Origin: Stegostoma tigrinum
Taxonomy: Eukaryota
Length of the DNA: 64,000 bases
Direction of reading: 5' to 3'
NCBI RefSeq assembly: GCF_030684315.1
Contig: NC_081400.1
Coordinates: 8,127,464-8,191,463 of the forward strand
This document shows positions 6,597 to 56,882 of this stretch, piece after piece. Both the position numbers and the translations under genes were made by a program. Under the pieces are notes generated by a model. That model searched no databases. It saw only the letters and a program-made list of their open reading frames with translations, and was not told where the DNA came from. Position 1 is the stretch's first letter, and every line of letters starts with the position of its first letter.

Positions 6597-7107
6597 AGTA
6601 GATCGTGTCTTTCCATCCTTTACAGCCAGGGATAATTTCAAAACCTATTTAACTTGCTCTGATAAGGCAACAGTTTGAGCAGTGTAATCATTTCATCAAG
6701 GCACCATTCTCGAATTAGATACAGTTATTGCTTGTAAATTTCCAGATTTATACATGGAGCTAAATTCAGTTCTATAAAAATGTTAAATAGTGCAATTGTA
6801 TTGATTCATCAACTTGTGCAGCTGTTGGTTGAAAGTTGAACCTGCTAAACTGAGTTTTATAAAACCAGTGAAAGGCTATTTCAGGTCTTTAAAAAAAAAC
6901 ACTTTGTACATTTGCCCCTTGTTTATGCTCACAAGCTCGCCAGTCCTTGGTTCTTTTGTCCATGTTCCACTACCCTGATGTCACAACAAATAAGTATCAA
7001 AATGTCACACTGATTGTTTTAATTAACATGTAAAAATCAAAGAAAATGCTTGCACACTGTTGGGGATTAGGACATGTTGCGTTACAGCAAACGTGGGCAC
7101 TTCCTAC

Positions 7108-7216
7108 CTGAGTCCCATTTTCTGTATGCCCACCCAGCAGTGACAGAAAATGCCAACAAAATAATAATCATCACCACCAAAGTCCCATAATACTTGAATT
7201 GGTTAGTGGTCTGTGG
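7108..7216 (-). pseudogene. Copy A TM exon (QFKYYGTLVVMIIILLAFSVTAGWAYRKWDS)
   Basis: Aligns without gaps to copy B PFLLYGSSVLMIFLLMASTVVISWSRRNQNA. Phase-1 donor |gtagg. The available acceptors are out of phase, so the 5' boundary is approximate. Confidence 0.75.
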
Positions 7217-8339: not shown

Positions 8340-10102
8340 GACGGCCGGTCCCTATACTCTTGCATTCCCCATTAAGATGGCCTAAAGGCCCTCCGCTTGT
8401 TCCTGTCCTGCAGGCCCGACCAGTCCCCCTCCATTGACACGCTCATCTGCCTAGCTGAACTCGTCCTCACCCTTAACAACATCTCCTTCAATTCCTCCCA
8501 CTTCCTACAGACAAAGGTGGTGGCCATGGGTACTCGCATGGGTGCAAGCTATGCCTGCCTCTTTGCAGGATATGTGGAACAATCCCTCTTCCAAAACTAC
8601 CATCCCCCACCTCTTCCTCTGTTACAACTCTGACTGTATTGGCGCCGCCTCATGCTCCCATGAGGACTCGAACAGTTCATCCACTTCACTAACACCTTCC
8701 ACCCGAACCTTAAGTTCATCCGGACAATCTCCGTTACCTCCCTCTCCTTCCTGGACCTCTATATTTTCATCTCTGGCAAATGCCTGGAAACCGATATCCA
8801 TTTCAAGCCTACTGACTCCCGCAGTTACACCTGTACACCTCCTCTGACCCACCTTCCTGAAAAAAGTTCATCCCCTATTCCCAATTCCTTCACATACACC
8901 ACGTCTGCTTCCAAGATGAGGCATTCCACTCCCAGGCATCCAGATGTCCTCATTTTTCAAGGACTGCAACTTTCCCTCCACAGTATTCGAAAATGCCCTC
9001 GACCATGTCTCTCGCATTTCCTGCAACTCATCGCTCACACCCTCTCCCAGCAATAACAACCAAAATGGAATAACCCTCATCCTCACGCACCACTCCACCA
9101 ACCTCCAGATCCAACGCATCATCCTCCGACACTTCTGCCATCTGCAATCTGACCCCACTACCAAAGACATTTTCCCTCCACAACCTTATCTGCTTTCCAG
9201 AGGGACAACTCTCTCCATGATTCCCTTGTCCGCTCCATACTCCCTACCAGCCCCACCACACCAGGCACTTTACCCTGCAACAGCAGGAAGTGCTACACCT
9301 GCCCCCACACCTCCCTCCTCACCCCCATCCCAGGCCCTAAGAAGACTTTCCACATCAAGTAGATGTTCACCTGCACAACTGCTAATGTGGTATAGTGCAT
9401 TCGCTGTTCCCGTTGTGGCCTCCTCAACATCGGGGAAACCAAATGGAGGGATGGGGACCACTTTGTGGAACACCTACCATTGGCTCACAACAAACAACTG
9501 CACCTACCAGTCACGAACCATTTCAACTTCCCCTCCCATTCCTTGAATGCCACGTCCATCCAGAGCCTACTTCAGTGACACAACGATGCCACCCAAAGGT
9601 TGCTGGAACAGCAACTCATATTTCACTTGGGAAACTTACAGCCCAATGGTATCAATGTGGTCTTCACAAGTTTCAAAATCTCCCCTCCCCTGAACGCATC
9701 CCAAAAGCGGTCCAGCTCATACCTGCCTCCCTTTCCTGCTCTCCCACCTATCCACTCCTCACACCTCAAACCCCACTCCCATCTCCTCCAGAACAGCCTC
9801 ATCCCACCTCCCTGACCTTTGCATCCTCCCTGGACTGATCTATCCGCTCCTTAACTCACCTTTACTGGTCCCAACGCCGCCTCCTTGACCTATCTGTCTC
9901 CCCTCGTTTATCCATCTTCTGTCCGCTTCCCCCTTTCTCCCTATTTATTTCAGAACCTCCTTCCCCTCTCCCATTTCTGAAGAAGCGTCTAGACCTGAAA
10001 CGTCAGCCTTCCTGCTCCTCTGATGCTGCTTGGCTTGCTGTGTTATTCCAGCTCTACACCTTGTTATCTCGGATTCTCCAGCACCGTTAGTTCCTACTAT
10101 CA
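8340..10102 (+). mobile_element. Penelope-like retroelement (RT + GIY-YIG remnants)
   Basis: AMGTRMGASYACLF RT motif, FTCTTANVV...C..CG..IGET GIY-YIG region, LIFHLGNLQPNGINV C-terminus, pyrimidine-rich tail and a hammerhead-type terminus. Confidence 0.85.
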
Positions 10103-13100: not shown

Positions 13101-13204
13101 TGTATTGTACAACCTGCCTGTATAGCACAAAGGAACAAAATCTTTCACTGTAGCCCAGTACAAGTGATAACAATAAACCAATCAGTTTGTTTCATGCAAG
13201 TATC

Positions 13205-13520
13205 GTCACAGAATCCCTGCAGTGTGGAAACAGATCCTTCAGCCCAACAAGTCCACACTGACCCTTCGAGCATCCCACCCAGACCATTTCCCTATCAGCT
13301 ACTTAATCTACGCATCCCTGAATGCTACTGGCAATTTAGCATGCCCAAACTACCGATCCTGCACATCTTTGGACTGTGAGGATAGGAAATCAGATCACCC
13401 AGAGGAAACTCACACAGACACAGGATGAATGTGCAAACTCCACACAGGCAATCAACTGAGAGTGGAATTGAACCCATGTTCCTAGTATTGCAAAGCAACA
13501 GTTCTAACCACTGAGCCAAA
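13205..13520 (-). mobile_element. HE1/V-SINE-type tRNA-derived SINE
   Basis: Reverse complement has the head tggctcagtggttag...ttcaattcc, a central tgtgtggagtttgcac domain and a CR1-like tail. Confidence 0.75.
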
Positions 13521-14227
13521 GCATTATTGTCAAGGAAGTAACGAGCATGTAGAGCTGTGGCAATTAATAATGTGGCAGAAGAGAATTAAAAAAAGAATAA
13601 GAGCGAAAGATACTTTGACCACTTCCAAATCTCTGAATATTTGAATAGCAAATTTGGATACCTGTAGCATTCAGACCTTAAACTAACATAAAAGAACTTC
13701 GGATGGTAAAAATCAGGAATAAAAAGGGAAAAGCTCAGCAGGTCTGGCAGCATCTGTGAAGGAGAAAACAAAGTTAAAGTTTCGGTTCTGGTGACCCTTC
13801 CTCAGAACTAATGTACCCCTGTTAACGTAACTGAAGAAAGATTTATCGACTGAAAATTTGAGATTGCTGAACAAATGTGAAGAATTTTGCAAATATACAT
13901 TTTGATGTACAACATTAGCCTGACCTGGTTTGGATATAGGTAATTTGTATTCAATAAAACAAAACCCACATCAGTTAAATCCTGAGGAATGTACTAAAGT
14001 AACAAGAATTTCAATACACGACCAAGAATCAATTGATCAAACCAAGCCTGAGTATTTAGAATTCACCTGCATACTGGTTCCTAATTCAAATGTTTGAATT
14101 TGGATACATGAAGACTATAGGGAAAAAATGTGCATTAAAAAGACACTTTCATACCTTACACCAAGACCGGAAGATTGCATTCATAGGGTTAGCAGTGCAC
14201 CATTCTTCTCTAAAATTGATTTGCTAG

Positions 14228-14570
14228 TAGGTGGTACAGTGGCTTAGTGGTTAGCACTGCTGCCTCCCAGTTGTAAGAACCTTTATTCAATTCCAGCTGG
14301 GGTAACTCTCTCTTGCAGTTTGTGTGTTCTCCCCCTATCTGCATAGTTTTTCATTGGGTCCTCCAGTTTCCTCTCACAGTCCAAAATACACAGGGAAGGT
14401 GAATTGGCTGTGCTATATGGTCCCATAGTATTCAGGGATGTGTAGTTTAGGAGGGTTAGATGTTATAAATTCAGCAATATGGGGTTATGGTAAACTGTGG
14501 GTATGGATGGGATGCTCTGTGGTGCAGACTCAATGAACCAAATGGCTTCTTACTGCAATTATGGATTCAA
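14228..14570 (+). mobile_element. HE1/V-SINE-type SINE (diverged)
   Basis: ggtggtacagtggcttagtggttagcactgctgcctc head, similar to the other copies. Confidence 0.7.
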
Positions 14571-16119
14571 TTATCTTGGCAAATATTGCTGACAATGAGA
14601 GTAAAGGATATTTATGAATTTGTCACATCTAATGGATTTTACCAATGTCGAGTTATGCCATTTGAATACAGGAATGCATCAGGCACATTTCAATGATTAG
14701 TGAATAGCATTAAATTTAAGGTGCCTAATCGTGCAAGTTGTTTGGACAACAACGTCATATAGAGTAATACGCGGAAGAAACACAGAGTAGAGATAAATCT
14801 TATTTACAGAATTACAGTCTGTCATATTGGTTTTAAAAGTAGCAAAGATTGATTTTGCATAAGGCAAGGTGATGTACCTAGGTCATACTATTAGGCAACA
14901 ACAGAAGTGAGAGCTGCAATTGATTTTACCACGCTGAAAACAAAATGGAAAATGAGAGGGTTCTTGGGAATGCGTGTCCTCAGTTGAAGGCTTGTAATTA
15001 ATTTAGTACAATTGGCTCCTGTATTAATTAGAGCTATTTTAATAAACTAAAATTTGCAGTCGATATTATCAGCTTTGAAGCTTGAAAAGAACTCTCACAG
15101 GATGATGAGGTTAGAATGAAAAGCTCATTCCTAATTTTCGCATGAAATTGAACAGAAGATATTTAACACTCTCTGATTGAGAAAGGACCATCAGCCGTGT
15201 TAACAGCTCTTCAAAACGTTGATGTTTGTGTTAGAAGTCGGCATTTTGAGTTAGTCTTACGGACTGTAATCCTCAGGTTTTTTTGATACGTTTAATATAT
15301 TAAACTCCATTATTGTTGATACAATATGTCATATCTGCATCAGTCTACATTAAGAAAACTTTACATGCGGCCAAGAATTTTAAAAAAGTGCAAATGCAGT
15401 TTTCTCACCCCAAATGTAAATTGCTATACATTGAAGAACGTGACCAGGAGAACTGAAAGATGAGTAAATATGTGGTGCATGGGAGAATGGATGTGAGTTC
15501 TGAATTTTGCTTATGTTCACATTATTACTAACCACATCATGAAAAAGACTTTCTTTAACGTAGCGTTTGATGTCTGAGGTTCTAAACATAACTTTTCGTT
15601 GCTTTAGTTTTATTCCTTTGTTGATATTGAATGGAAGTGAATTGCTGAGTTGATATCATTAGTTCCAATGATGTTAGAGTACAGTTAGGCCATTCAGACC
15701 ATCGAACCTGTTCCAGCATTCAACCATTCTCCTGCCTTCTCGCTGTAAATCTTTAGGGAGTTATAAATCAGAAAATATCTGTCGTTATCTTAAATGCACT
15801 CAATGACTTCGCCTGAAGATCCCTCTGTGCAATGGACACCACAGATTAACCACCGTTGTCGGTCGTTCACTCTGAAGTTGTGCTCCAGATTCAAGTCTCT
15901 CCTAGTAGAAACATCTTCTCCACATCCACTCTATCCAAGCTTCTCAGTTTTCTTCAAGCTTCAATCAGATCCTCCTCCATCCCTGCTGATGATCTGATGA
16001 TCAGACGAGCAGATATGTTTGGAAAGAGGGGCAAAACTTTGAAGATGTACAGTGACATTGATATTAATTACATCGCTCATAACCATTAAAACACAAATGA
16101 AATCACATTCAATATGTAC

Positions 16120-16420
16120 CTCTTTGATTATGAGACGATTTAGCTGATGAGAGCTTTAGCAGAGGTGGTTTGAATACATCTAGTGATGACAGCATCGTTC
16201 CTTGACTCTTTTGTTCGAATTCCAAAATGATTTCTCATGCTATATCTCCCGGTGCAGTCGATTGTCCCAGAAAAATCTGGCCAAAGTTCGACATCCCACG
16301 TGGAAACATTCCAGCAGATGGGGAGTGGACTTGTGACAACATTTTTCACCAAACGGATCAATGAAACATTTTCCACGGAAAACGTTTTATCCACCTGTAG
16401 AGACAAGAGTTCGGCAGCTC
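16120..16420 (-). pseudogene. Copy A C-domain exon
   Basis: 87-nt intron after VJ, ctcttcag| acceptor. WNVS and YS are retained, but the B-strand Cys is now Arg (LIR) and the F strand reads TRC vs TCS. Two TAA stops near the end; 301 nt (out of phase). Confidence 0.85.
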
Positions 16421-16507
16421 CTGAAGAGTGCGGAAGATGAGAAGAAAATACTGTTCAAAATTCCTGATTACTTAAGGCGAAATTAGTAAAACAGTCTTAA
16501 CGCTTAC

Positions 16508-16846
16508 CTGTTATGAACAATTTCGAACCATTTCCGAATATGAAGGGCATTCTGTTAATTTTTTTTCTGGCTGAACAATAGTATAGACCGGAATCACTTT
16601 TCTGGACGCTAGCAATCACAAGAATATAAACAGTAGAGTCGTTATTAACTTCCCCAGAATATCTCCCATGTGGTAGAAAGTGCTTGGTCACGATGTAAAC
16701 GCTTTGCACATGTTCTTGCTGCTGCTGTTTATATCAGTGAACAGAGAGACTGGCAACCCAACCTGTGTGACAATGAAACCTAACAAGACTTCCAACTGAG
16801 ACAGTTTCAACTGTTGGACCCCGTGAGAACACTGTCTGACAGATAA
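16508..16846 (-). pseudogene. Copy A V-J exon (TVFSRGPTVETVSVGSLVRFHCHTGWVASLSVH*YKQQQQEHVQSVYIVTKHFLPHGRYSGEVNNDSTVYILVIASVQKSDSGLYYCSARKKINRMPFIFGNGSKLFIT)
   Basis: The conserved Trp codon is TGA (16736-16734) and the phase-1 acceptor AG is missing (ctta|TTATC). The |gtaag donor is intact. About half the residues are identical to copy B by eye. Confidence 0.9.
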
Positions 16847-17857
16847 TAAGTGAAGAAAAAAAGTTAAAAATGTTGTGAGGCAAAATGAATTTTTATCAAG
16901 AAATATCAAAATCAACAAATTATCTGCTAAGGGAAATGGGACAAAAATCACATCATTTTACAATAGAGAAATGGTATGTGCAATTTTTGTCTATTTAGAG
17001 ACTTTTGACAGTATGATTCTTCACAACAAAATGAACATTACAAGGAGAGCTTCTACCAAGCCGAAGCTATTCGTGATATTACGCTGGAACTAGTGCTTGA
17101 ATCCATAATTTAGAAAAGCTAACCTGAAAGAAATTGGAGCACAGAGTTAAGAAAATCATTGTCTACAGCGAATATTCTTACCGTGAGGTTTGCACTGACT
17201 TTTCAATTTTGTTTTTTTGAGGCTGAAGCAGAGAAATCATGCTTTGAACTGCATGGCTGATGCAAGGAGCGCAGGCAGGTAAAAATAGCCGAATGGAAAA
17301 TATAGCACAACGTTTGGGATCGCAGTTAGCTTTCTGTTTTACACTTTAAGCGTGCACACATTTGCCTCTGAGCAACTGTAAGCCCAATGCAAATTTCTTT
17401 CAACTCGTGTAAAACATAGATTTTGACACTTCTTTTATAGACTTTGAAAAAAAATTCAAAATCATTCAGTTTTTTCACTAAAGTAACGATGCAGGGAACA
17501 ATATATTCTTTCTGCTGAGACATTAAACGAAGCCAACTCCATACAACTTCAGGCTGAGGTTCATATCAGATGTTCAATTAACACTCAAATAGTGCAAGTG
17601 CATATTGTTTGATTGTTTTGGGATATTTATTTTATTCTTGTGGCATCATGCTGATGAAGCCAATGTTAATGAATATATTTCTGGTTTTACGAGAGGAAAA
17701 AACATCCACAGGAAAAAAAATCCAAAGAACTGTGGACTCAGAACAAAAACAAAATAAAAAGCAGGCGCAGTTGGAAAACTTAGCTTTCTTATAACATCTG
17801 TGGATAAGAAATCAGAGTTGGCGTTTCGGCCCCAGTGATCCTTCTTCAGAGTGATTA

Positions 17858-41247: not shown

Positions 41248-41292
41248 TCAGAGTGTCTGTTCTGCTGTATATGCAAGTTGAGCATAAAGAAT
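41248..41292 (-). CDS. Copy B exon 6: terminal exon with ITIM (ILYAQLAYTAEQTL*)
   Basis: cttctcccttag| acceptor, phase 0, IxYxxL consensus, TGA at 41250-41248. Same-length paralog ILYASLASTAGSRH* at 6128-6172. Confidence 0.78.
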   Translation of the reverse strand: MLYAQLAYTAEQTL

Positions 41293-41466
41293 CTAAGGGA
41301 GAAGATATATGATATCAATAACAAAAAAAATAGGAATTATCAATTAATTTCACCCCTAGCGTGGATTCATCGGCACATTAATTAATGGAGCCAGCGTTGA
41401 AGTCAAAATATCAGTGTCTCTTGGCCTGAAAATCTGTTTTCAAGGCCCATGTACCCCAGATATTTT

Positions 41467-41494
41467 CTGAAGAAGGGTCTCGACCCGAAACATC
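41467..41494 (+). ncRNA. Minimal hammerhead ribozyme core
   Basis: CTGAAGA-A-GGGTC-TC-GACCC-GAAA-CATC. Confidence 0.55.
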
Positions 41495-42469
41495 AAACTT
41501 TCCTGCTCCTCTGATGTTGCTTGGCCTATTGTGTTCATCCAGCTTCACACCGTGTTACCACAGATATATGTCTGAACTCATATTAAATAAACAATAAGAA
41601 ATTCACTAAATCCTCTGAACCAGATCGTTGAGTGACCATGCTATGGAGCACAGAAGTAAGGCCTTTCTGCTCATCGGTTTTATGCAAGTGAAAAACAAGC
41701 ACTTCCAATTATTATAGCCCCATTTACCAAACTTTACTTCCAGGGCTTGTATACAACAAGAGCACAACTAAACACTTGTTAAAACTTGTGAGGATTTCTA
41801 TCTCCTCCACACTTACAGGCAACGGACTTTAAATTATACTCTAGTTGGAAAAGGTAAAGTCCTCAACCCTCCTCGAAACAACCTGCCTCTTAACTGAAAT
41901 CTATGCCACTAGCCATTTCTTCCTCCACGAAGGGAAAGAGAAAGTATATTCCTGTCCACAATGTTTATGTCCCTCGTAACATTGGCAAATTTACTCATGC
42001 CCCTCCTAAAAATGTTTAAATGAAAATAACCCCATCCTACCAAATCTGTCTTTATCAGTGAAAATATTACTTCTGAACATGAAATGAGTAAAATACTTCA
42101 AATTCAAATTCCGTCATCCTTGAACACATTTGAACAGGTTCATATAAAATATCCATATACACAATGCTGTTGAATTGAAAACTAAATTTTCATCATTTAA
42201 TGTAATATAAAGTACAAATGTTTGTCACTTTCTCTTTGTAACAGATCAAAGACTATAAAAATCCTAATCACAATTATCCCTTCTATTTTCCATCGCTACA
42301 CACAGGCGCATTATTCAGATTGATGCAGATTTCCTCAAAATTACTGATATTGAGGATCCAAAAAAAATGTTTTCATATCTCGTCAGTTCGACCAAAAAGT
42401 TACACAGCGCTGCTTTGGGGCATTCATTGTGGTTTTCTTTTAGGGAGCTTATTATCAACACCAACCTGC

Positions 42470-43290
42470 CTTAAATAAAAACCAAAGGAACTGTGAATAC
42501 TGCAAATCAGAAACACGAACACAAGTTGCTGTAATAGCTCAGCAGATCTGGCAGAAACTACGTAGAGAAATCAGGGTTAGCATTTCGAGCTCGGTGACCC
42601 TTCTTCACAAATGATGGAAACTTTCAGTTTATATGCTGCAGATAGGACGCGGGGAGGCGGTAAGGAGTCAATGATAGGTGGGAATACAGCCCAAAGAGAG
42701 ACAAAAACAGGTGGACAGATAAAGGCATAATAACAATCTGGCTTCGAGGGTGAATAGCTGTTAATGGCTAACAATAGTTCTTGTAATGGCAGAGCATGTA
42801 ATAACAAGGCCTGGTGTTTGGACAAGGGAGTCAGGAAATGGGTGAGTTCAGGCCCTATATTTGTTGAACTCCAGCCTGTTTCTGGAGGGCTGCATGGCCC
42901 CCAAAGGAAAATGAGGTGTTATTCTTCCAGCTTGCACGAAGTTTCTCTGGAACACTGTAGCAAGCCTGAGACAGGGATGTTAGCAGGGAACAGGGTGGTG
43001 TGTTAAAGTGGCAGGCAACTGGAAGCTCCGGGTCATTTTTGCAGGCAGAATGTAAATGTTTGGTGAAGCGGCCACCCAGCCACCTCTGCGTTTCCCCAAT
43101 GTAGAAGAGAGCACATTGTGAGCAGTAAATGTGGTAGACTAGATTGTATGAACTGCAGGTGAAGTTTCTGCGCTACCAGCATTTCTGAAGGGTCACCGGA
43201 CCCAAGATGTTAGCTTTTATTTCTCTTCACTGATGCTGCCAAGACCTGCTGAACTTTTCCAGAAACTTCTGTTTTTGTTTCTGTCTTAAA
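42470..43290 (-). mobile_element. Penelope-like remnant inside the last intron of copy B
   Basis: Antisense YIGET/HFN/LEE..LIF GIY-YIG C-terminal remnants, flanked by hammerhead-type termini. Confidence 0.65.
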
Positions 43291-43335
43291 TTCTTATCCG
43301 AAATCTAATGATAATGATAATTTCCCTGCACTCAC

Positions 43336-43394
43336 CTCCTTTTCTTTGTCACGATGTCTCGAATCTGAGCAATTATATTTCTTGGCTCGATCAG
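43336..43394 (-). CDS. Copy B exon 5: cytoplasmic (ADRAKKYNCSDSRHRDKEKE)
   Basis: tttccctttgtattag| acceptor, GAG|gtgagt donor, 59 nt, phase 1-0, 140 nt after the TM exon. Phases fit both neighbours. Confidence 0.7.
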
Positions 43395-43534
43395 CTAATA
43401 CAAAGGGAAACATAAACATTTGCAATTTCCACAATGAAATTTTGTTGATTATCATATAAATAAACACAGCAAAATAAAATTCGACAGTAATGTGATTAAT
43501 TTTGAGTAAAAACACGGGCACATCACATTCTTAC

Positions 43535-43642
43535 CCGCATTTTGGTTCCTGCGGCTCCAACTAATGACTACAGTGGAAGCCATAAGGAGGAAAATCATCA
43601 GAACGGAACTTCCATAAAGCAAGAAAGGACAAATCAGACGTC
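43535..43642 (-). CDS. Copy B exon 4: connecting peptide + transmembrane (GRLICPFLLYGSSVLMIFLLMASTVVISWSRRNQNA)
   Basis: Polypyrimidine tract + caaccag| acceptor, |gtaag donor, 108 nt, phase 1-1. Uncharged hydrophobic run followed by RR. Clear paralog at 7108-7216. Confidence 0.8.
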
Positions 43643-44984
43643 CTGGTTGTGAAAAGGTAAAAATGTTACCATTAAAATTTTCATCACCTGAGCTATCATA
43701 TATGGCAGAAAGACTAGGGACAGGCATGAACGTTATTTTGAAACAATGATGGTTTAGAACTTAATGTCTCACTAGAGGGTTCCTCCATAAGGTTCTTATG
43801 ACAAACTACCAAATGTTTTCTGCAAGCAATTGCACTGGCCACAAACTTTAATTATCCGATTGAATAGTTTAGCAAAACATGATACTAACTACTGGGTGTG
43901 TTTTAAACTGTCAAGAAATGTCATTAATTTTCCATCATTAATGTTTACCAATGATCAAAACTCTCTTTTCAAATTTGGATTAAAATCATTGAGTTCCAAA
44001 GTGTGAATGTCGAAAGTTTGTATGACTATTCAAGAATTAATTACTTCTCTATTTGAGAAGTTCTTAGAGGCTGACACGCTTTTACAAGGCAGGTTTAAGG
44101 TAATCAGGCACAGGCCACAATTTAAGTCAATGGAAGAAGCAGTGATTTCAACGTCTGAGCCCACAAATTAATAAATACATTTATGTTGTTTTGGGTAGGT
44201 TGGACTCGCAATCATTGACTTCCAGTTGGAGAACTTTAGAATTGCGTAGAGTAGAAGCTACTGAGCACATCAGGAGCACATGGCTTAACTTAGAAGTTGG
44301 TCGTGGGAAGAGAAGCTCAGATTAAAATTTTATTTGATGGGAAAAATAAAGAACAGATTTCAGTTAAGGAAAAGCGTACATTATGAGAATACTGCTTCCT
44401 AGCAAATAATGTCAGCAAGAAACTGTATCAAAAACAATATTGTCAAACATTGCATGAAGGCCTAGAATGCAGACAATGTTTAGAGACAGGGAATTGGCAG
44501 ACTCAGTTAGAAATGTTAGCAAACATTATGCAAGACCAAATAGTCCTTGATTAAATGAATCACAAGGCGTTAATGAAATTCGCAGGAGAAATAGAATTAT
44601 CTTTCTCTGATCTTTTATGTTACATAGTTGAATTTTTGACAATGCGGTGTTGTAAGTGGCAAATAGGCTTATAAAAGTATTGGATTTTCCTGCCATTAAT
44701 CTGAATCTGTCATGTTAGGTATAGAATGCCTTTCCTCTGTTTATGCTGTTAGAAGCATCTATATCATTTAGTGCTGCAATCAGTACACTTGGCTCGAGCT
44801 ATTGAAATGCCACTGCAAAACTAGCGAGTATAGCTTATTTACTACCCATGGATAGTGCATGAGGCTGATAAAAGGAGGAGGTCAGTATCAAAGTATTAGA
44901 AAGAGCAATGAGCATAGGAAGTGTTAAGAAGAGAAGAGTAGATAAAGAATACTCTGTGTCTGCAGAATTCACACAGAATATGTA

Positions 44985-45450
44985 TGGCGGAGGAGATTTA
45001 CCAGGATCCTGGCTGGACTGGAGGGCAGATCTGATGACGAAAGGTCGAGGGAGCTAGGGCTTTTGTCATTGGAGTGAAGAAGGATGAGAATTGACTTAAT
45101 AGATGTGTACAAGATAATGAGAGGCATAGATAGAGCAGATAGCCAGATTTTTCTTTCCCAGGGTGGAAACGAGTATTGTGAGGGGCTCAATTTTATTGTG
45201 ATAGGAGGAAAGTGTAGGGGAGATGTTGGAGGTAGGTTCTTTACACAGAGAGTGGACTACGTTGCTGGCATTGGGAGTGGTATTAGATACAAGTGGAATT
45301 AGGAACATTTAAACTATTCTTGGATAGGCACATGGGTGATAGGAAAATGTAGGGTTTGTGGGGGAGTTCATTTTTAGAGTAGGATAATAGGTCGCACAAC
45401 ATCATGGGAAAAGGGTCTGTACTGTGCTGTACAATTCTATGTTCTCTCTA
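44985..45450 (+). mobile_element. CR1 3' fragment
   Basis: DLIDVYKIMRGIDR...FFTQRV and a ttctatgttc tail. Confidence 0.85.
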
Positions 45451-48024
45451 TGTCCTTTTGAGCTAAATCAGTGCTGATTATATTCACACAGGAGATGTAG
45501 TAAAGACACACACTAGTGATAACTATGCTCAGTGCGATGAAATGAAATAATTGAAATGCAGTTAAGAAATAGAGGAGGAACAGAATTTGATGGTTTTGGT
45601 GTGCTTCATTGCAAATTTAATGGTAGAACAACGATCAAAATAACTTAGAGGATGTTAAATGAGACCACATAGTGTCTTGAAAAATAAGAAGTATAAAAAA
45701 GGTGATAATTATATCACTATATTGTATTTGCAATTGTGCAGATAAAATAATGCTAAAAATACAATTGTTAGTGGGTGTTAATTATTACGGTAAAAACAAA
45801 TATTTATTCAGAGATTTTAGATGAAATAACTTCTGAATTTGTGAGAGATCAAGCCTACATCCATCTAACGAATTGCAACTGCATTGAAATGTGAATGTTT
45901 GGTAGTTTAACAAAAATGTTAGGGACATCAGTACCAGGAGATGAATTCCATGACTGTCTTCCAAGTCATTAACATAGATAAATCCCCAAGGTCAGATAAT
46001 ATCTATCCCAGGGTACTGAAGAAGGCAAGAGAGGAGTTTGCTGACAACTTGACAGAGATCTCTGTAGCCCTTTCATCCATAGGCAAAGCCCGAGAAGAAC
46101 GTTGAATAGCCAGGGTTAATTCTTTGTTGAAGAAGGGACACAAGAATAATCCAGGAAAACATTGTCTGACAACTTATAACACAGGAAGGAGAATTATTAC
46201 GGAAAATTGTGTGAGAGAGGAATTGATGTCAATTGAGGAAAAAAAAAAGAATTTGTTTGGAAAAGACAGGATGGCATTAGTCAGTCATGCTGACAACACA
46301 GTGTGGAGCTGGAGCAATATAGCAGGACAGGCAGCATCATAGGAGCAAGCAAGTTGACGTTTCAGGTCGGGACCCTTCTTCAGAAATGGGGAGGGAGGAG
46401 GGAGCTTGCAAATAAATAGAGAGAAGGAGTGGGGCTGGCGAACTTAGGTGAGATGGTGATAGGTGAGTGCAGGGAGGGAGTGTTGGAGATTGGTAGGTGG
46501 GATAGGTGGGGCGGATTGGTGGAGTGTCCATCTTCTCCCCAACCCAGGGAGATTAGAACACGGGAAAGGGATACTTAGAAGGGTATGTGTGCTCAACACA
46601 CGAGTCAAGATTTGGGAGTGTGAGTGACCCATATCTGAATCTCCCCCTCTGATTGTCTATTCACTTCTTGATTCTGTGTTTCTCTATGATTCGCTCCATA
46701 TTTAACTTCTCTCCCACCACCTGCTGATTCTCCCCCCGTCTACTTCTTTCTCCCTCTCTGATTCTTTCTTGTGTTTCCAATTCACTCCCCTCATATCCTG
46801 CTTCTCTCCCACTGAAATCCATTTTAAAAGTGCCAACACTTCAACGCATAATTGGGTTTCTGCTCGTGGAGAGTTGTCCCTCTGACATCTCACGACAATG
46901 CTTCATGATGACATAATGTCTGGAACTCTTCGCTTTTGTGTTTTTGGGTCAGCATGCATCCATAGTCATGGGTGTCAAAAAACACAGACTTAATTCTTAA
47001 AGACTTATGATCACTGTCATAAAAATTTCCAGCCGTAGTCGTTTGCTACTTGCCTGGCTTCTTTCTCTCAAAGATAGTAGGAACTGCAGATGCTGGAGAA
47101 TCTGAGATAATAACATATAGAGTTGGATGAACACAGCAGGCCAAGCAGCATTAGAGGAGCAGGAAAGCTGAATTTTTGGGCCTAAACCCTTCTTCAAAAT
47201 TTTCTGAAGAGAGGTCTAGGCCCAAAACGTTCCTCAAAGACGTCATTGATGCAAGGGAATGTGATGTTAATTTGATGACAGTGACTTAATTGAAGGAGGC
47301 ATATGCAAATTAGCAAAACCTCTCTTGGACATATATTAGGAGCTTAGTTCACTTTAAGTATTTCTCCATCCCTCTTAACATCTTGCCATTTCCATATCAT
47401 TTTAGTTCTATACCTCTGAGATTTTGTCTAAATATCTGTGTATTGCTTCCTCACTTCTTGGATTTCTACATACCCCAAACAAGTGATTGTCGCTTTTGCT
47501 TTAAGTTTCATACACATGACCTCTTTTGAGAAAGTTTCCAAGGTATCACCTAACCTTATCGGAGTTATTTATTCCTTGATTAAAATAGTGAGTTTACGCT
47601 TCTTGTGTAGGTCTCTCTTCACCCCATCTTGCCTGAATTGTCTATAATCTGGCATATTATGCCAATTTGCATATGCCTCTTTCAAATAAGTTTCTGTCAC
47701 GAAATTAGCATCACATTGCCTTGCATTAATGAACAAACTGCATTCATATAACTGACACATGAAATTATTTGCATCAAATTAATGGCACTGAACATTGCCA
47801 TGCTCCCTTCATTTTTATAACTTGACTACATTGACACCGCCTTCTAGATTGACTTTGCTCATCTTGCAAGTTTGTTTTCACGTTAGCCATTCCAGTACAG
47901 ATAATACATATCCTACTTAACAAAATTGGTTGAAGCCTCAAGAGCAACCACCTTGCCACCTGATAAGTCCTCAGTTGGTTCCATTCAGCACATTTTGCTA
48001 TTGTTTCAGATTTGCAGCAAAGAA

Positions 48025-50420
48025 CAGAGGACAAAGAAAATTACAGCATACGAACAGATCCTTTGGCCCACCAAGCCTGCAAAGACAAGTTGCCCATCAC
48101 AACTAAAACCCCCTCCCCTTCTGGGGACTGTATCCCGCTATTCCCATTCTATTCATGCATTTGTCAAAACACCCTTTACACATCAGAATTGTATCTCATG
48201 CAGCTACTTCCCCTGGCAGCTAGTTTTAGGCACCCACCACCCTTGGTACAAACAAAATCTTACCGGGTACGTCACCTTTAAACCTGGTCCCTTGCACCTT
48301 AAATTTTTGCCCCCCCAGTAACTGACTCTTGCACCCTGGGAAAAAAGGTACTGACTGTCCACTATCTCCGTGCCCTTCATAATGTTGCAAACCTCTAACA
48401 GGTCTCCCCTCAACCTCAGTCACTGCAGTGAGAACAATCATTTTTCTCCATATTCTCATCATAGCTAAGGCTCTCCCTACCAGGAAATATCCAGACAAAT
48501 GTTTTCTGTACCCTCTCCAAGGCCGCCACATCCTTATGTTGCCTTATCAATGACAGTTTGCCACCTGCATTGCCACTTTCAGTTACCTGTGTACCTGTAC
48601 ACGCAGATCCCCCTGCCTATCAGAGCACTTACGTGTTCTGGCATTTATGTAGAACGGTCTAGGTCCGAAACATCAGCTTTTGTGCTCCAAAGATGCTGCT
48701 TGGCCTGCTGTGTTCATCCAGTTCCACACTTTGTTATCTTCCAAAATGCATTGCCTCACATTTTCCCGGGTTAAACTCCATCTGCCATCTCCCTGCCCAA
48801 GTCACCAACCGATCTATATCCAGCTGTAACCTTTGAAGGTCCTCAACACTTTTGGCTACCAATCTTTGTTCCATCAGCAAACTTACTAATTGCACCAGTT
48901 ACATTTCCCCCAAATCACTTATATCTATTAGAAATAGCAAATGACCCAATACTGATCCCTGAGGAATGCCACTAGTCACAGCCCTCCATTCAGAAACACA
49001 CCCTTCCACTGCTACCCTCTGTCTTCTACGACCAAACCAATATTTTTTATCCGTCTTGCAAGCTCACCTCTGACCCCATGCGATTTTACCTTCTGCATCA
49101 ACCTGCCATAAGGGACTTTGTCAGAGGTCTTGCTGAAGTCCATGTAGACAGGATCCACTGCCCTACCCTCATTGATCATCTTCATAACTTCTCAAAAAAC
49201 TCAACCAAATTAGCGAGACATGATCTTCCTTTCACAAAACCAAAATGCCTCTCGCTAATATGCCCACTTATTTCCAAGTTGGAGTGAATATTTTTTCGAA
49301 GAATCTACACCAACAATTTCACTGCCACTGACATAAGGCTCTGTAATGAGCTGGATTATTCTTGCAGCCTTCTTAAACAAAGGATCAACATCAGCTACTC
49401 TCCAATCCTCTGAGACCTTCCCTGCAGCCAGTCAGGATACAAAGATTTCCCTCAAAGCCCCCAGAAATTTCCACCCTGGCGTCTTTCAGTATTTTGGAGT
49501 ATATTCCATCAGGCCCTGGGAACTTGTCTACATCCATGTTTTTTTTCAAGAGCCCAACATCTTCTCCCTTTTGATCTCAACATGATCCAAACTATCTATG
49601 CACGAATCCCCAAACTTATCTCTTCGGTGAATACTGACACAAAGTACTCATTCAATACATTGCCCTTTTTTTCTGGCTCGACACATAAATTCCCTTCCTT
49701 GTCCTTGAGTCCGTTATGCCTCTCCATGGCTAAAGCTAGCTCTTTATATATGTATAAAAAGCCTTGGGGTTTTCCTTAATCCTGTTGGCCCATGACATTT
49801 CATGACCCCTTTTAGCCTTCTCACTCCTTGCTTAAGTTTCTCCTGACTTTCCTAGCTTTGTGTGTTCCTAGCCTCCTACTCTTGATAAATGCATCCTTTT
49901 TCTTTTTGTTTAGGCTCACAATATCTCTCATTATCCAAAGTTACCTCAATGTTCCTTAGTTAACCTTCATCCTTACAGAAATCTGCTGTTCCCAAGTTCC
50001 TCGCAACTAGCACTTGAAAGCCTCCCACATACCACATTTTGATTTGCCCTCAGACATCTGCCACCAATCTACTTTCTACAGTTCCTGTCCAATATTGTTG
50101 CAATTAGCCTTCCCCCAGTTTAACAGCTTCACCTCACAACTGTACCTATCTTTATCTATCAGTACCTTAAAGCTTAGAGAATTGTGATCACTCTTCCTGA
50201 GCTGCTCCCCCAACTGAAATAGAGCAGCTCTCTTAATAGAGAGAGATTACTGATGGTCGTTAAGCATGGCAGTCATTGCAACTTAACTGATGGAGAATTT
50301 GAGAAGATGTGACATTCATGGTAACCTCAACCTCCCCGACTGAATAATCGACATCTGGTCGGGCTCATTTCCCTGTACTAGTTCTAGTACGGCTCCCTTC
50401 TTCATAGGACTACCTACACA
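48025..50420 (-). mobile_element. CR1 LINE, degraded
   Basis: GDLLEVCNIMKG, antisense RT segments and an ELVQGNEPDQ endonuclease remnant. Confidence 0.8.
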
Positions 50421-52099
50421 AGGAGCTGCAGGGATGGGGTTGTTGGGAAGATCATTGGGAATTACCCACAAACCAATTTCCAGAAGCAGTGACTGCACTG
50501 ATGCAGATCTTCCCAAGGTCAGCCAATCAGTGTTACCACTCTGCTGCCCTCTTCCGGGTGAGTTGTCAGTTCTTTGTTAACTTTCATTGAGTTAGTATAT
50601 TCAAATTATCCTGGATGGTTGGTTAGCTTAATTGACTAGTCAGCTGAATTTTCGTATTGGCTGGAGTTGCCATGAATGTCCCATCTTCTCATGTTCTCCA
50701 TCCACTAAGATGTGATGACTGCCATGCTTAACGACCACCAGTAGTCTCTCTCTATTAAGAGAGCAGCTTTGTTTTCCTCTAGGACTGTGGTTACTTTACA
50801 TTACCTAGCATTCTTAGTGCTGCATTAGATGGATGTAAAACATAAGCCACCGTAGCATTTTACACGCAGTTGAAAGTCATAATAGAATAGGTAAGATGAA
50901 TTTCACATCACATTTGAGATTTTATGTGCCGGAGGCAAAACTCATGTTGCATACATGGATAGTAGAATAAATTGTATTAACAGGTGGCATGTTCTCATAT
51001 GGGAAATAAAAAAAAAGTCCTGCTCTTTTATTCGTATTGTACCCTGATTATTGTGTGAAGGATATACTTTCCTTCATTGGGAAATGGTATACTTGCCTGA
51101 GAGACATGGAGGGATACAGGAGTGGGTGATAATGTCACACATGGAGAGATTATTGACTGAGGCTGTATTGACTAAGTTGAGAAGAATGACAGTGCTCTGA
51201 ATGAAGCATAAAGAAGTCTAAGAGCCCTCGGCAGACGTGATGAAGTAAGGGTGCTTCTCCTGTTTGTTTAAGTCGACAACAGGACTCAAAGTATTAAGGT
51301 ATCGGATATTTACGGCTGGAATGAGGAAACATTTCCTCTTTCAGTTGGCCAACATGTTCGGTTCTCTACCATGGAAGACAGAGAAAGCTGGATCAGTAAG
51401 AATGTTTCTTAAAGAGGTTTTCTTTTAAATATTCAAAGCATCAAAATGTACAGAGACAATGTGGGGAAATGATGAGGAGATAAATGAATATGTCTTGATA
51501 ATCTGAGTCACAGAACAGAAACATTGGAGCTAGAAGCATTAGGATCTTAAACTAGATATCAGGCCAGTACTAACAAATGATGGAGTGTTAGGCGAAGAGA
51601 TAACACCATCACATTGGCTACCAATGGACCTAAAGAAAAAAAAAACTAATTGCCTGATTCTTACAGTCAGTAAAATTGACAAGTCTCAAGAGAAAAGAAA
51701 AAGATGACCAGACTTCAATTGCACAACCTGAACTGTATTTGTCCAACATGATTTTTTTTACAATCTTATGGGACAGTATCAACAATAATCTACAAATAAT
51801 TGGCATGATTGAAACATTCCAGAAGTGCTGTAGAACCAGAGGCCTCTGTAAACAGGAGGCTCCTTTGGTAGGTTATTTGAAGGAACCTCAACAAGTTCAA
51901 TGATCATATCGAGTTTTTTATGTTGATAATGGATAAAGATTCACTCGTGAATGTGAAAAATGTTTTACTTGATGACAATGGGTATGAAATATCTTGCATA
52001 TAAAAACAATTGTTAGAATGGGATTTTAATTTCCTTTCCAGAATTGAAAACTTCTTTTTGTGATTTTGGCAGAATCCTACAGATTAGATTTTTTTTCTA

Positions 52100-55040
52100 T
52101 GCCTTCGTAGGATGTGAGCAACGCTGGCTAGCCAGCATTTCTTGCCGATCCTTGTTTCCCTTGAGAAGGTGATGGTAAACTGCCTTCTTGAACTGCTGCA
52201 ACTCACCTGTTATCGACTAACCTACATTGCCGTTAGAGGGATTTCCAGGATTGGGATCCAGCAACAGCGTAGGAACAGTAATATATCTTTAAGTAAGGAT
52301 TTTGAGTGGCTTGGAGGGGAACTTCAAGATGGTAGTGTTCCCACGTGTTTGGTGCTCTATACTTCTAGATGGAAGTGGCCCTGTGGTTGTAAGGTGCTAT
52401 CTGACAATCTTTGGTAAATTTCTGCAGTGCATCTTGTAGATAGTGCTTTGGATAGTAGAATGAGTGAATACTTGTGGACGTAATGCCAATCCAGTGGGCT
52501 CTTTTATTCTGGAAGCTATCAACCTTCTTGAATGTTGTCAGGGCTGCACTCATCCAGGCAAGTGAGGAGCATTCCATCATACTCCTGACTTGTGCCTTGT
52601 AGAGAGTGGACAGGCTTTGAGGAATTAAGGAGGTGAGTTACTCTCCACAGTATTCATAGAACATAGAACATTACAGCACAGTACAGGCCCATCGGATCTC
52701 GATGTTGTGCCTACCTGCCATACCAATCTGAAGCCCATCTAACCTACACTATTCCATGTATGTCCATATGCTTATCCAATGAAAATTTAAATGTACTTAA
52801 AGTTGGCGAATCTACTACCATTGCAGGCAAAGCGTTCCATACTCTCACTACTCTCTGAGTAAAGAAACTACCTCTGACATCTGTCCTATATCTATCACCC
52901 CTCAATTTAAAGCTATGCCCCCTCGTGCTCGCCATCACCATCCAAGAGAAAAGGGTCTCCCTATCCACCTTATCTAACCCTCTGATTATCTTATATGTCT
53001 CAATTAAGTCCCCTCCCAAACTTCTTCTCTCCAAATGAAAACAGCCTCAAGTCCCGCAGGCTTTCCTTGTAAGACCTTCCCTCCATATCAGGCAACATCC
53101 TAGTAAATCTCCTCTGCACCCTTTCCAAAGCTTCCACATCCTTCTTATAATGCGGTGACCAGAACTGTACGAAATGCTCCATGTGCGGCCGCACCAGAGT
53201 TTTGTACAGCTGCAGCATAACCTCTTGGTTCCAGAACTCCATCCTTCTTTTAAAAAAAGCTAAAACACTGTATGCCTTCTTAACAGCCCTGTCAACCTGG
53301 GTGGCAACTTTCAAGTGTCTGTGTACATGGACACCGGGATTTCTCTGCTCATCTACACTACCAAGAATCTTACCATTAGCCCAGTACTTTGCATTCCAGT
53401 TACTCCTACCCAAGTGCATCACCTCACACGTGTCCGCTTTAAACTCCATTGCCACCTCTCAGCCCAGCTCTGCAGCTTATCTATGTCTCTCTGTAACCTA
53501 CAACATCCTTCATTACTATCCACAACTCCACCGACCTTAGTGTCGTCTGCAAATTTACTAACCCATCCTTCTATGCCCTCATCCAGGTTGTTTATAAAAA
53601 TAATGAACAGCAGTGGACCCAACACCGACCCTTGTGGTACACCACTAGTAACTGGTCTCCAGGATGAACATTTCCCATCAACCACCGCCCTCTGTCTTCT
53701 TTCAGCAAGCCAATTTCTGATCCAAACTGCTATATCTCCCACAATCCCATTCCTCTGCATTTTGTACAAAAGCCTACTGTGGGGAACCTTATCGAAAGCC
53801 TTGCTGAAATCCATATACACCAGATCAACTGGTTTACTCTCATCTACCTGTTTGGTCACATTCTCAAAGAACTCAATAAGGTTTGTGAGGCACGACCTAC
53901 CCTTCACAAAAGCGTGCTGACTATCCCTAATCAAATTATTCTTTTCTAGATGATTATAAATCCTATCTCTTATAACCTTTTCCAATACTTTACCAACAAC
54001 TGAAGTAAGGCACACTGGTCTATAATTACCAGGGTTGTCTCTACTCCCCTTCTTGAACAGGGGAACCACATTTGCTATCTATTCCTAGCTTCTGACCTTG
54101 TCTTGTAGGCCCAGTGTATATATGATGAGTCCAGCTGAGTTTCTGGGCAATGATATCCTCCCAGGATGTTGATAGTGGGGAATTCAGTGATGGTAACGCC
54201 ATTGGATATCAAGCGGTAGTTGTTAGATTGTTTCTATTTGGTGATGGTCATACACTGGCATTTTTGTGACGTGGATGTCACTTGCCACTTGTCAGCCAGA
54301 GGCTGCATATTGTCCACATCTTGTTGCATTTGAACGAAGGACAGCTTCAGTATCTGAGGAGTCACAAATGGTGCTTAACATTGTGCAATCATCAGTGAAC
54401 CTCTCCACTTCTGACCTTATGATGGAAAGAAGTTCATTGATGAAGCAGCTGAAGATGGTTGGGCCGAGCGCACTGCACTGAGAAACACCTGCAGAGATGT
54501 CCTGGAACCGAGATGATTGATCTCCAACAACCCCAACTACCTTTCCTATGTGTCAGTTATTACTCCAAACCTTTTTTGCCCCCGATGCCCATTACTTCCA
54601 GTTTTGCTAGGGTTCCTTGATGTCACACTCAGTCGATCGCAGCCTTGATGCCAAGGGCTGCCACTCTCACCTCACCTGTGGAATTTAGTTCTTTTGGTCA
54701 TGTTTGAACCAAGGCTGTAATGAGGCCAGGAGCTGAGTAGTCCTGTCAGAACCCGAACTGGTCATCTCTGAGCGCGTTATTGCTGAGCAGGTAATGCTTG
54801 ATAGTACTATTGATGGCATCTTCCATCACTTTACTGTTGATTGAGACTAGACTGCTGTGGTAGCGATTGGCAGCACTGGATTTGCCCTGCTTTTTGAGTA
54901 CAGGACATACTTGAGCAATTTTCCACATTGCCAGATAGATATCAGTGTTGTAACTGTATTGAACAAGCCTGGCCCGGGGAGTGGCAAGCTCGGGAGCACA
55001 ATTAATCAATTCTATCGCCAGAATATTACCAGGGTCAGTA
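52100..55040 (-). mobile_element. Older non-LTR retrotransposon (CR1/L2-group) interrupted by a younger CR1
   Basis: MWKIAQVCPVLKK...SINSKVME...DQFGF (54746-55171) and MECSSLAW (52365-52580) flank the nested element. Confidence 0.7.
52655..54082 (-). mobile_element. Young 5'-truncated CR1 (RT)
   Basis: ORFs 53419-54069, 53000-53455 and 52744-53034 with intact RT motifs. catagaacatagaac tail. Confidence 0.95.
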
Positions 55041-55659
55041 GTGTGAATTGAACAGGAACTAATGAAGAAAGGCCTTTCCACATCTGAATCTGCCCAAACC
55101 CAGAAATTCAATACATTCACTTCAATTACAAAGGGGACCATTAGGGATCTTGGCAGAAGACGCCTTGGCACAGATTGCGCTTAACACGTCTGGAATGAAC
55201 ATTAATTACAATAACGAGCAGTGATGGACCAACAAGGAAAGAAATAGAAGAATACTTGTTAGTCGGGGGGATAATGATGAAATAATTTTTGGAAATACGA
55301 CAGAACAGAAACTCCAGAATTGATCTCTTCATTGAAATCCTTTGTTTCGATTTATAGATACACTGTAATAGTCAAAGCTAAATCGGTGAAGTGTGAACAA
55401 ATGTCGTGAGCATAAATTCAAATTTAATATTTGAAAGTATAGACTTGCCTCCAACTATGCATGTATTTCCTAGATAGATTGAAGGATCTAACTATGCAGA
55501 AATAAAGATAAACTAGGCAGCAAGGTGAGAAAGTAAATGAGGTGGTAGTTTGTCAGAAACATTGAAAGAAAACGATTTTTGGTGAATAAACAGCTGATAC
55601 AAACACTCAGTGTCTCATCGGAATTAAATATAAAATATATCAATAATATAAATTGTTAC

Positions 55660-55962
55660 CTGTCTGGTATGAATAGTTTTCACTGATAAGATGTGTTGTT
55701 GAGTTGATTTGAATTGAGCAAGTACAAACAAACCAGTTGCTATGCTTGCTTACTTCGACTCCGATTTGACTGCTGACACTATATATACCGTCATGGATTA
55801 TTATATCTGTGTCAATCCATTCCTCCTTCGCCTGTGACGAAACATTCCAGCGAATGGTAAGGTAATTCGAGGCTGCACTGCTCATGAAGCACATCAATGG
55901 GATAGTTTGCAGTGAAAGAATTTCATCTGATGGTGAGTGTAAGAGTGTTATTGTCGGGGAAC
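55660..55962 (-). CDS. Copy B exon 3: C1-set-like Ig constant domain (GSPTITLLHSPSDEILSLQTIPLMCFMSSAASNYLTIRWNVSSQAKEEWIDTDIIIHDGIYSVSSQIGVEVSKHSNWFVCTCSIQINSTTHLISENYSYQT)
   Basis: Acceptor ctctgcag|, donor |gtaac, 303 nt, phase 1-1, after a 92-nt intron. Light-chain-like PxxxLLxxPSxE A-strand, LxC, IxW, YSVSSxI E-strand and F-strand TC. Confidence 0.9.
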
Positions 55963-56054
55963 CTGCAGAGTTTTGTAGGTAAGATGTATTTAAAATATAA
56001 CATCGGTATGTGGGTATTTACTGCGAACTGATAAGCAACAACGCTCATTCTTAC

Positions 56055-56390
56055 CGACAATGAATAATTCAGATCCTTTTCCAAATATGAAGGATGATCC
56101 ACTAAACTTCTTAGCAGCGCAGTAGTACATGCCTGAGTCTTTTATTTGCAGATCATCAATAACAAGAGTATAAATAGTCCCTTCTTCGTTAACCTCTCCT
56201 GAAAATGTTCCGTTTGGACGCGTATGTTTTAGAACGGTGAAAACGAGCTGTATGTGTTTTCGTTGCTGGTATTTATACCAGAAAATAGTTCCAGCTGCGA
56301 GCCATCCCGTGTGGCAATGCATCTTACATTTACTTCCAACTGAGGCAGTTTGAACTGTTGGAGTCTGCAGGTACGCTGCCTGAGAGACAA
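56055..56390 (-). CDS. Copy B exon 2: germline-joined V-J Ig domain (VSQAAYLQTPTVQTASVGSKCKMHCHTGWLAAGTIFWYKYQQRKHIQLVFTVLKHTRPNGTFSGEVNEEGTIYTLVIDDLQIKDSGMYYCAAKKFSGSSFIFGKGSELFIV)
   Basis: Acceptor ttctccag| and donor |gtaag, 336 nt, phase 1-1, open frame. V-set hallmarks: B-strand Cys, WY, LxI, DSGxYYC, and a J motif FGxGSxL in the same exon. 64 residues separate the two core Cys. Confidence 0.93.
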
Positions 56391-56839
56391 CTGGAGAACA
56401 GAATGTATTACATTAATTTCTTGTGTAGTAGGAAATCAAGAAAAAATATTATAGCTCAAAAACTCCCAGGCAATGAAAACTGTCTTCTGTGTTGTTCATC
56501 TTGTATTCTTGGAAAAGTGATGGTCCCCTGGACACACTGCAAGATCACACTGCAAGATCACACAAATAAAATAAAGACAAAAGAATCAGCTAATCTTTTG
56601 TTTTGTGATTGTACTGAAGGGTGTTTTTGTATTTGGGCGACGTAATGAGTTCCCCTGCTCTATTCCAAACGTGCCTGTTATGTTAGAACATTGGCCTTTT
56701 GTAATAGACCAATAATAACTTTAATTGTTAACGCGACATTAATATTAAATACTGCCAGATTGAACGTGCCACAAGAATCATCTTTTTAAGTGATTTTACA
56801 TTCGTAATTAAGCCACAAATTTATGAAAGATAATCTTAC

Positions 56840-56882
56840 CGGGCAACAAATGAAAAAGCGCCAGCGGAGTCAAGAGGATCAT
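56840..56882 (-). CDS. Copy B VJ-C1-TM-ITIM IgSF receptor, exon 1 (leader): MILLTPLALFHLLP(V)
   Basis: ATG at 56882, 43 nt of hydrophobic coding sequence ending G|gtaag (phase 1), typical of Ig/TCR leader exons. A homologous stretch lies at the same place in copy A (17124-17159). Confidence 0.8.

Follow-up and report, generated by a model that had tools for sequence, protein, structure and literature searches.

An intact, non-rearranging VJ-C1 gene of Stegostoma tigrinum with a predicted inhibitory tail, and its clustered, PRARP-like family in sharks, skates and rays

Models of how antigen receptors arose need a non-rearranging membrane receptor, built of a joined variable and joining region (VJ) and a C1-type constant (C) domain, for the RAG transposon to split. 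The shark genes brought into this discussion to date are UrIg, UrIg2 and NKp30, and PRARP-type genes have been discussed for bony vertebrates. The PRARP genes, which Fu et al. are said to have described in 2019, are reportedly non-rearranging VJ genes with a potential immunoreceptor tyrosine-based inhibitory motif (ITIM) and a V-C1 build in every group except birds. They reportedly occur in bony fish, amphibians, reptiles and birds, and are not known to have been reported from cartilaginous fish. PRARP is cited elsewhere as a VJ gene of the major histocompatibility complex (MHC) and within the set of joined-VJ genes (PMC10751288; PMC11599192). The new analysis concerns a 64,000-nucleotide (nt) stretch of the Stegostoma tigrinum genome (contig NC_081400.1, positions 8,127,464 to 8,191,463; hereafter the window), which carries on its minus strand a six-exon VJ-C1 gene. 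Specifically, comparison of its sequence with relatives indicates that this gene belongs to a shark family that is most likely the cartilaginous-fish branch of the PRARP lineage.

The six-exon gene is intact and the gene model is sound. The exons (Table 1) were searched one by one and their joined frame was checked by script only, which returned 894 nt with 297 sense codons, a sole stop at the terminus, exon phases of 1, 1, 1, 1 and 0, and AG-exon-GT boundaries around every internal exon, with ten of ten splice dinucleotides canonical. The original prediction had proposed these six minus-strand exons with canonical sites, matching phases and a product of 297 residues, and its coordinates, lengths and frame were all reproduced. 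In addition, DNA contigs from four runs match the leader-V-C stretch letter for letter; these runs cover two samples of a single study that may itself be the assembly source. The encoded protein is probably a 297-residue type I membrane protein that comprises a leader, the VJ domain, one C1-type domain, a stalk cysteine, an uncharged transmembrane segment and a 45-residue tail with an ITIM.

The exons for the transmembrane segment and tail lie far from the rest, behind an intron full of retrotransposon debris, and their assignment depends on comparison with relatives. The closest of these is a 300-residue RefSeq model of the bamboo shark Chiloscyllium plagiosum, named 'lachesin-like isoform X1' (P0061). 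The five exon peptides (V, C, transmembrane, cytoplasmic and tail) align with it in collinear order, at identities of 53-77%. The exon model is beyond chance because each exon peptide matches P0061 in the right order, and the transmembrane exon was recovered with P0061 by tblastn at E=9.8e-8. When ten family proteins were searched against the window by tblastn, no further family exon appeared in the 12-kb intron, and all family exons were confined to the gene and to a second copy at 6-17 kb. That second copy, although decayed, likewise has its transmembrane-like exon far from its C-like exon, which further supports the model. As judged by this homology, the distant transmembrane and tail exons are part of the gene, as had been claimed for them when they were first placed 12-14 kb away behind transposons.

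The gene does not stand alone. When 1.84 billion cluster representatives were searched by phmmer with the C exon, only 35 matches at E<=1e-3 were obtained, led by elasmobranch proteins of about 300 residues that share the order of leader, VJ, C, Cys-stalk, transmembrane segment and short tail. A ten-member profile search found 45 elasmobranch proteins and two tortoise proteins, and the 41 candidates from a word-indexed search that used the V domain of P0061 yielded no proteins outside the family. The elasmobranch genera represented are Scyliorhinus, Mustelus, Cetorhinus, Carcharodon, Rhincodon, Chiloscyllium, Hemiscyllium, Stegostoma, Heterodontus, Pristiophorus, Leucoraja, Mobula, Hypanus, Pristis, Narcine and Amblyraja, and RefSeq gene models of the family exist in at least 15 elasmobranch species. 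Several members can share one scaffold, with at least 15 in Heterodontus, 7 in Cetorhinus and 5 in Rhincodon. Two groups can be told apart: group A, which includes the window gene, has an FGxG motif, and group B has a degenerate strand G, LQNGxTLLVG, together with a longer tail that ends in I/P-x-Y-A-S-L-E-F; both groups are linked on the same scaffolds. In group B (P0019, P0076, P0012, P0023, P0031, P0034 and P0028), the V domain holds two extra cysteines, and some group B models end ahead of the transmembrane segment and resemble secreted light chains. As such, these comparisons indicate that sharks, skates and rays share a clustered family that evolves by birth and death, and that the window gene is one of its copies. 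In the databases the family members are named 'immunoglobulin kappa/lambda light chain-like', 'Ig heavy chain Mem5-like', 'immunoglobulin gamma-1 heavy chain-like', 'T cell receptor alpha chain-like', 'lachesin-like' or 'uncharacterized', which bears out the expectation that such a gene is easily mis-annotated as light-chain-like. The original prediction was overstated in another respect, as the gene is no lone relic and its family is already present as RefSeq models.

The V domain carries its J region within the same exon. Exon 2 encodes a cysteine, WYK, DSGMYYC and the J motif FGKGSELFIV, with the V domain ending in YYCAAKKFSGSSFIFGKGSELFIV, and matches the Pfam V-set at E=5e-12. No heptamer of a recombination signal sequence (RSS) was present within the VJ exon of the gene or of the second copy, and no heptamer-spacer-nonamer combination within 4 kb of the VJ exon. 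Across the whole window, the heptamer-spacer-nonamer scan gave three weak matches, against 0.75 expected by shuffling, none of them near either gene copy. The gene never rearranges, because V and J form one exon without recombination signals; a germline-joined VJ lacking RSS had been foreseen in the original prediction and was recovered here as a single exon with a negative scan around it.

The C domain is C1-type by sequence and predicted fold. All sequence matches of the C exon in the PDB were immunoglobulin (Ig) C1 domains (CH3, CL and IgA), and eight of ten relatives pass the Pfam C1-set threshold, the best at E=1.2e-9. An AlphaFold2 model based on a 40-row family alignment (predicted local distance difference test, pLDDT, 80) shows strands A-B-C-D-E-F-G and the two short helices typical of C1; its top Foldseek matches were C-beta of the T-cell receptor (TCR), IgNAR C1/C2, CL and CH3, with template-modelling (TM) scores of 0.7-0.76. 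A profile search of the PDB returned mostly multi-domain antibody constructs and gave no ranking of families. Nothing scored as clearly non-C1, and Pfam, PDB, AlphaFold2 and Foldseek all point to the C1-like fold first proposed from the exon sequence. In strand F, a Cys-x-Cys (C79-T80-C81 of the C exon) replaces the usual Tyr/Phe-x-Cys of C1 domains. This signature is present in 37 of 38 elasmobranch database members; the elasmobranch count is stated as 39/40 with the window gene, which has the motif, and the pseudogene copy, which does not, included. It also occurs in coelacanth, lungfish and four of six turtle and crocodilian members, and in 1 of 31 Ig C domains.

The membrane-proximal half of the protein carries the features of a signalling receptor. 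The uncharged transmembrane segment and the motif ILYAQL, a canonical textbook ITIM, can both be read in the exon peptides, as originally proposed, and one of the three tail tyrosines lies inside this motif. Within group A, 24 of 28 members were scored as having an uncharged transmembrane segment (for the remaining four, the flag came from a 21-residue window, which can include a flanking residue), and no activating counterpart of the ITIM (ITAM) was found among the members scored. A cysteine precedes the transmembrane segment in nearly all family members. The tail consensus across the family is E-T/S/I-x-Y-A-x-L-x-F, and the leading relatives of about 300 residues end in E-T-L-Y-A-H-L-A-F-T-A-D-P-T-L. 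The residue at position -2 of the motif varies: it is I in the window gene, S or V in some members and T in most (TLYAHL). Turtle and crocodilian members carry TEYAAV, a textbook switch motif (ITSM). An inhibitory or switch function is a reasonable inference from these motifs.

In such a model, the VJ domain would bind some ligand, a Src-family kinase would phosphorylate the tail tyrosine, and phosphatases of the SHP-1/SHP-2 type would then be recruited to damp cell activation. The conserved juxtamembrane cysteine suggests a disulfide-linked dimer; a complex prediction for two copies of the P0061 ectodomain scored 0.00 and speaks neither for nor against dimers. The transmembrane exon is 108 nt long with phase 1-1, and its skipping would therefore keep the frame in the window gene and could yield a soluble form, comparable to an isoform model of the bamboo shark. 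There, the isoform X2 model of C. plagiosum LOC122552429 lacks exactly the transmembrane exon (38 residues) and keeps the tyrosine tail (P0015 versus P0041), a difference that would predict a soluble isoform.

Homologues of the same architecture extend beyond cartilaginous fish, in line with the comparison to PRARP and VJ-C1 genes made in the original prediction. In the search of 1.84 billion sequences, a coelacanth protein (P0025) and a lungfish protein (P0024) each matched the C exon alone at E ~1.5e-5, and a tortoise protein (P0079) matched the shark family profile at E=3.9e-46. P0079, in turn, leads to relatives in turtles, crocodilians, squamates, birds and a frog. These sarcopterygian and tetrapod relatives share the VJ, the C domain, the juxtamembrane cysteine, the transmembrane segment and a terminal YAxL/V; the bird homologues have no match to PF07654 (C1-set). 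The P0024 model of Protopterus annectens has two V domains before a family-type C domain and ends without a transmembrane segment; either the architecture is a variant one or the model is incomplete. Across the 87 rows of a C-domain tree (IQ-TREE, LG+C20), a branch supported at 97/83 separates 56 of 56 family domains from teleost Ig light chain (IgL) C, frog Ig heavy chain C and multi-C proteins of gar, Mastacembelus and Mobula. Within the family, the C domain of the window gene is sister to that of P0061 (100/100).

The available data are thus compatible with a model in which the shark genes belong to the PRARP lineage. The gene has a one-exon VJ without RSS, a C1 second domain, a transmembrane segment with a potential ITIM, and sequence homology with tetrapod and sarcopterygian members. 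The family resembles PRARP in its non-rearranging VJ, its V-C1 ectodomain, its transmembrane segment and its short tail with a tyrosine-based motif of the inhibitory or switch type. Its homologues, furthermore, occur in reptiles, birds, amphibians and bony fish, the groups reported for PRARP, and its bird members have no recognisable C1-set domain, as is reported for PRARP. In contrast to PRARP, the shark family is expanded, with many clustered copies and the subgroups A and B. Membership in PRARP is rather probable on these grounds. The wider reading, that the elasmobranch genes are an undescribed PRARP branch that would put an inhibitory, non-rearranging VJ-C1 receptor in the jawed-vertebrate ancestor and have it expanded in sharks, is more tentative and is given a probability of roughly 45%. 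Beyond passing citations, no paper on a VJ-C1-transmembrane-ITIM family in cartilaginous fish was found in the literature searched, which is no proof of absence.

Several observations weigh against the main reading of the gene and its family. The link to PRARP draws on what is reported of PRARP and on matching architecture and taxon range, and none of the database entries found bears the PRARP name. Bona fide C domains of shark IgL and TCR are absent from the trees, as are SIRP, UrIg, NKp30 and named PRARP. The V domain taken alone is as near to mammalian V-kappa and TCR V-alpha in the PDB (42-44 bits) as to the V domains of tetrapod family members (42-49 bits). The C exon has C1-set as its sole Pfam match, which lies below the cut-off (E=0.031; 15 versus 21 bits). 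In most members the motif is T-x-Y-A-x-L, which fits the textbook definition of neither an ITIM nor an ITSM. Finally, the runs found to match the gene are genomic DNA only, and their contigs are contiguous, with no splice joints.

The alternative that survives best is that the shark genes share the PRARP design without being orthologous, either as an independent VJ-C1 offshoot or as a group nearer to SIRP or UrIg, with the transmembrane segment and tyrosine tail gained separately. The V domain agrees with that of tetrapod members only at a level of 24-33% similarity, no better than with V-kappa or V-alpha, the tetrapod motif reads TEYAAV where sharks have TLYAHL or ILYAQL, and the C tree is thinly sampled for outgroups. 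Yet the C domains form one group at 97/83 with the Cys-x-Cys in common, the juxtamembrane cysteine, uncharged transmembrane segment and terminal YAxL/V sit at matching positions, and the coelacanth and lungfish members bridge the shark and tetrapod groups, so that separate origin appears unlikely. In a protein atlas, SIRP clusters were among the near neighbours, which counts in favour of a tie to SIRP as a lead only. SIRP-alpha resembles the window gene in its V domain with a J-like strand G, its C1-set domains, its uncharged transmembrane segment and its cytoplasmic ITIMs that recruit SHP-1/2, but has two C1 domains and a long tail with four tyrosines, against one C1 domain and three tail tyrosines here. 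NITRs likewise form a germline VJ-type multigene family with many ITIM tails and birth-and-death evolution. They occur in bony fish only and their second domain, if any, is I-type, whereas the C domain here is C1 and the relatives are elasmobranch.

The window gene could, alternatively, have an intact frame and nonetheless be silent or newly dead, so that no protein is made. In favour of this stand the lack of any RNA run among those matching the gene, the long intron filled with fragments of long interspersed nuclear elements (LINEs), and a neighbouring copy that is a pseudogene. All 297 of 297 codons are open, however, the splice dinucleotides are canonical, a polyadenylation signal is present, and the family-invariant residues are all kept (the Cys pairs, both Trp, DSGxYYC, FGxG and CxC), which makes a silent copy improbable. 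The neighbour, by contrast, has at least six lesions in total: its V domain has a TGA at the invariant Trp, the strand-B Cys is changed to Arg, two stops close its C exon, no phase-1 GT donor follows its leader, and its last acceptor is GG. This contrast between an intact and a dead copy argues that the first copy would have been kept by selection.

That the locus is a germline-joined IgL or TCR-type gene of the kind usual in shark clusters, with the far exons there by coincidence, is very improbable. Germline-joined IgL clusters are common in cartilaginous fish, relatives bear the name 'kappa/lambda light chain-like' in RefSeq, and V-kappa and V-alpha are the closest PDB matches of the V domain. 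The V-J-C1 order, split leader, phase-1 exons and C1 fold are shared with Ig light and TCR chains, and the membrane-proximal cysteine with TCR. Against this, relatives have conserved transmembrane, cytoplasmic and tail exons in collinear arrangement, and no bona fide shark IgL or TCR constant region was found, by name or sequence, in the 32 checked of the 35 significant C-exon matches. An Ig light chain is a secreted chain that ends in its C exon and has no transmembrane exon; here the C exon ends without a stop or a C-terminal cysteine and continues through a GT donor in phase 1. TCR chains have RSS-flanked V and J segments and charged transmembrane residues for CD3; the window gene has neither RSS nor a separate J, its transmembrane segment is uncharged, and it carries its own signalling motif rather than relying on ITAM partners.

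The least probable explanation places the gene, as a short member, in the UrIg/UrIg2 family (Flajnik et al. 2023; PMC12227049), which is likewise elasmobranch and non-rearranging, with one VJ exon, a split leader and C1-type domains, and in which UrIg2 is membrane-bound through a transmembrane segment and auto-annotated as a light chain. Mobula multi-C proteins are also among the weak C-exon matches, but UrIg2 has 9-11 C domains and UrIg several where the window gene has a single C exon, no ITIM is mentioned for UrIg2 (PMC12227049), UrIg and UrIg2 are single-copy, the former linked to the MHC and the latter to the antigen-receptor complex, where this gene is multicopy, and the Mobula multi-C domains, which may be UrIg2-like, lie across the 97/83 branch and are without the Cys-x-Cys.

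The pseudogene copy has the same exon layout as the intact gene, with a gap of about 8.9 kb between its C-like and transmembrane-like parts; as the distant transmembrane exon is common to both copies, the long intron after the C exon would be ancestral to the duplication. Its C domain is sister to that of Stegostoma P0064 (LOC125449850) with 100/88 support, so the duplication would predate the split of these sharks. Remains of non-LTR (long terminal repeat) retrotransposons lie between the copies and within the long intron of the gene, and no conserved non-immune gene was found in the window, where only LINE elements accompany the two copies. The sequence ATGCAAAC, which lies 61 nt ahead of the ATG and resembles an octamer, was dropped as a candidate: it is not conserved upstream of the paralogue, and a 7/8 match is expected by chance.

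Table 1 Features of the window, with the gene in its own reading order and, for its exons, the match to the Chiloscyllium plagiosum model P0061
Feature	Position	Strand	Length (nt)	Description	P0061 residues (identity)
Exon 1	56840..56882	minus	43	start codon, split leader MILLTPLALFHLLP and 1 nt; donor GT	1-14 (11/14)
Intron 1			449		
Exon 2	56055..56390	minus	336	leader end and germline-joined VJ; phase 1-1	17-127 (75%)
Intron 2	55963..56054	minus	92	separates VJ from C exon	
Exon 3	55660..55962	minus	303	single C1-type constant domain, 100 residues; phase 1-1	129-228 (73%)
Cys-x-Cys of strand F	55718-55726	minus		within exon 3	
Intron 3	43643..55659	minus	12,017	full of retrotransposon debris	
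Reverse transcriptase (RT) fragment	53000-54069	minus		within intron 3	
RT open reading frame (ORF)	53419-54069	minus		within intron 3; Pfam RVT_1 E=2e-32	
Exon 4	43535..43642	minus	108	stalk with juxtamembrane Cys, uncharged transmembrane segment and basic stop-transfer, RLICPFLLYGSSVLMIFLLMASTVVISWSRRNQNA; phase 1-1	232-265 (53%)
Intron 4			140		
Exon 5	43336..43394	minus	59	cytoplasmic segment DRAKKYNCSDSRHRDKEKE; phase 1-0	268-286 (74%)
Intron 5			2,043		
Exon 6, coding part	41248..41292	minus	45	ILYAQLAYTAEQTL and stop; carries ILYAQL	288-300 (77%)
Polyadenylation signal AATAAA	40985..40990	minus		candidate, read from sequence; ~258 nt past stop	
Non-LTR retrotransposon remains	21042-23742	plus		endonuclease ORF and 559-aa RT ORF, between the gene copies	
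Tandem paralogue, pseudogene	6128..17159	minus		found by tblastn and reading; layout as in gene	
Paralogue, leader-like	17124-17159	minus			
Paralogue, VJ-like	16512-16850	minus			
Paralogue, C-like	16119-16418	minus			
Paralogue, transmembrane-like	7109-7198	minus			
Paralogue, tail-like	6128-6172	minus		ILYASL...	

These findings have consequences for how shark immune genes are counted and for how their receptors are thought to have evolved. Dozens of shark and ray models that are now named Ig light or heavy chain-like, lachesin-like or TCR chain-like are members of this VJ-C1-transmembrane-ITIM family and should not be counted as Ig or TCR genes. If the placement within PRARP is true, sharks would have expanded this receptor into a set of diversified innate receptors, with subgroups A and B, many V variants and soluble isoforms, analogous to NITRs or KIRs. 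Taken together, an intact shark gene of PRARP design within a multigene cluster would move this receptor type to the base of the jawed vertebrates.

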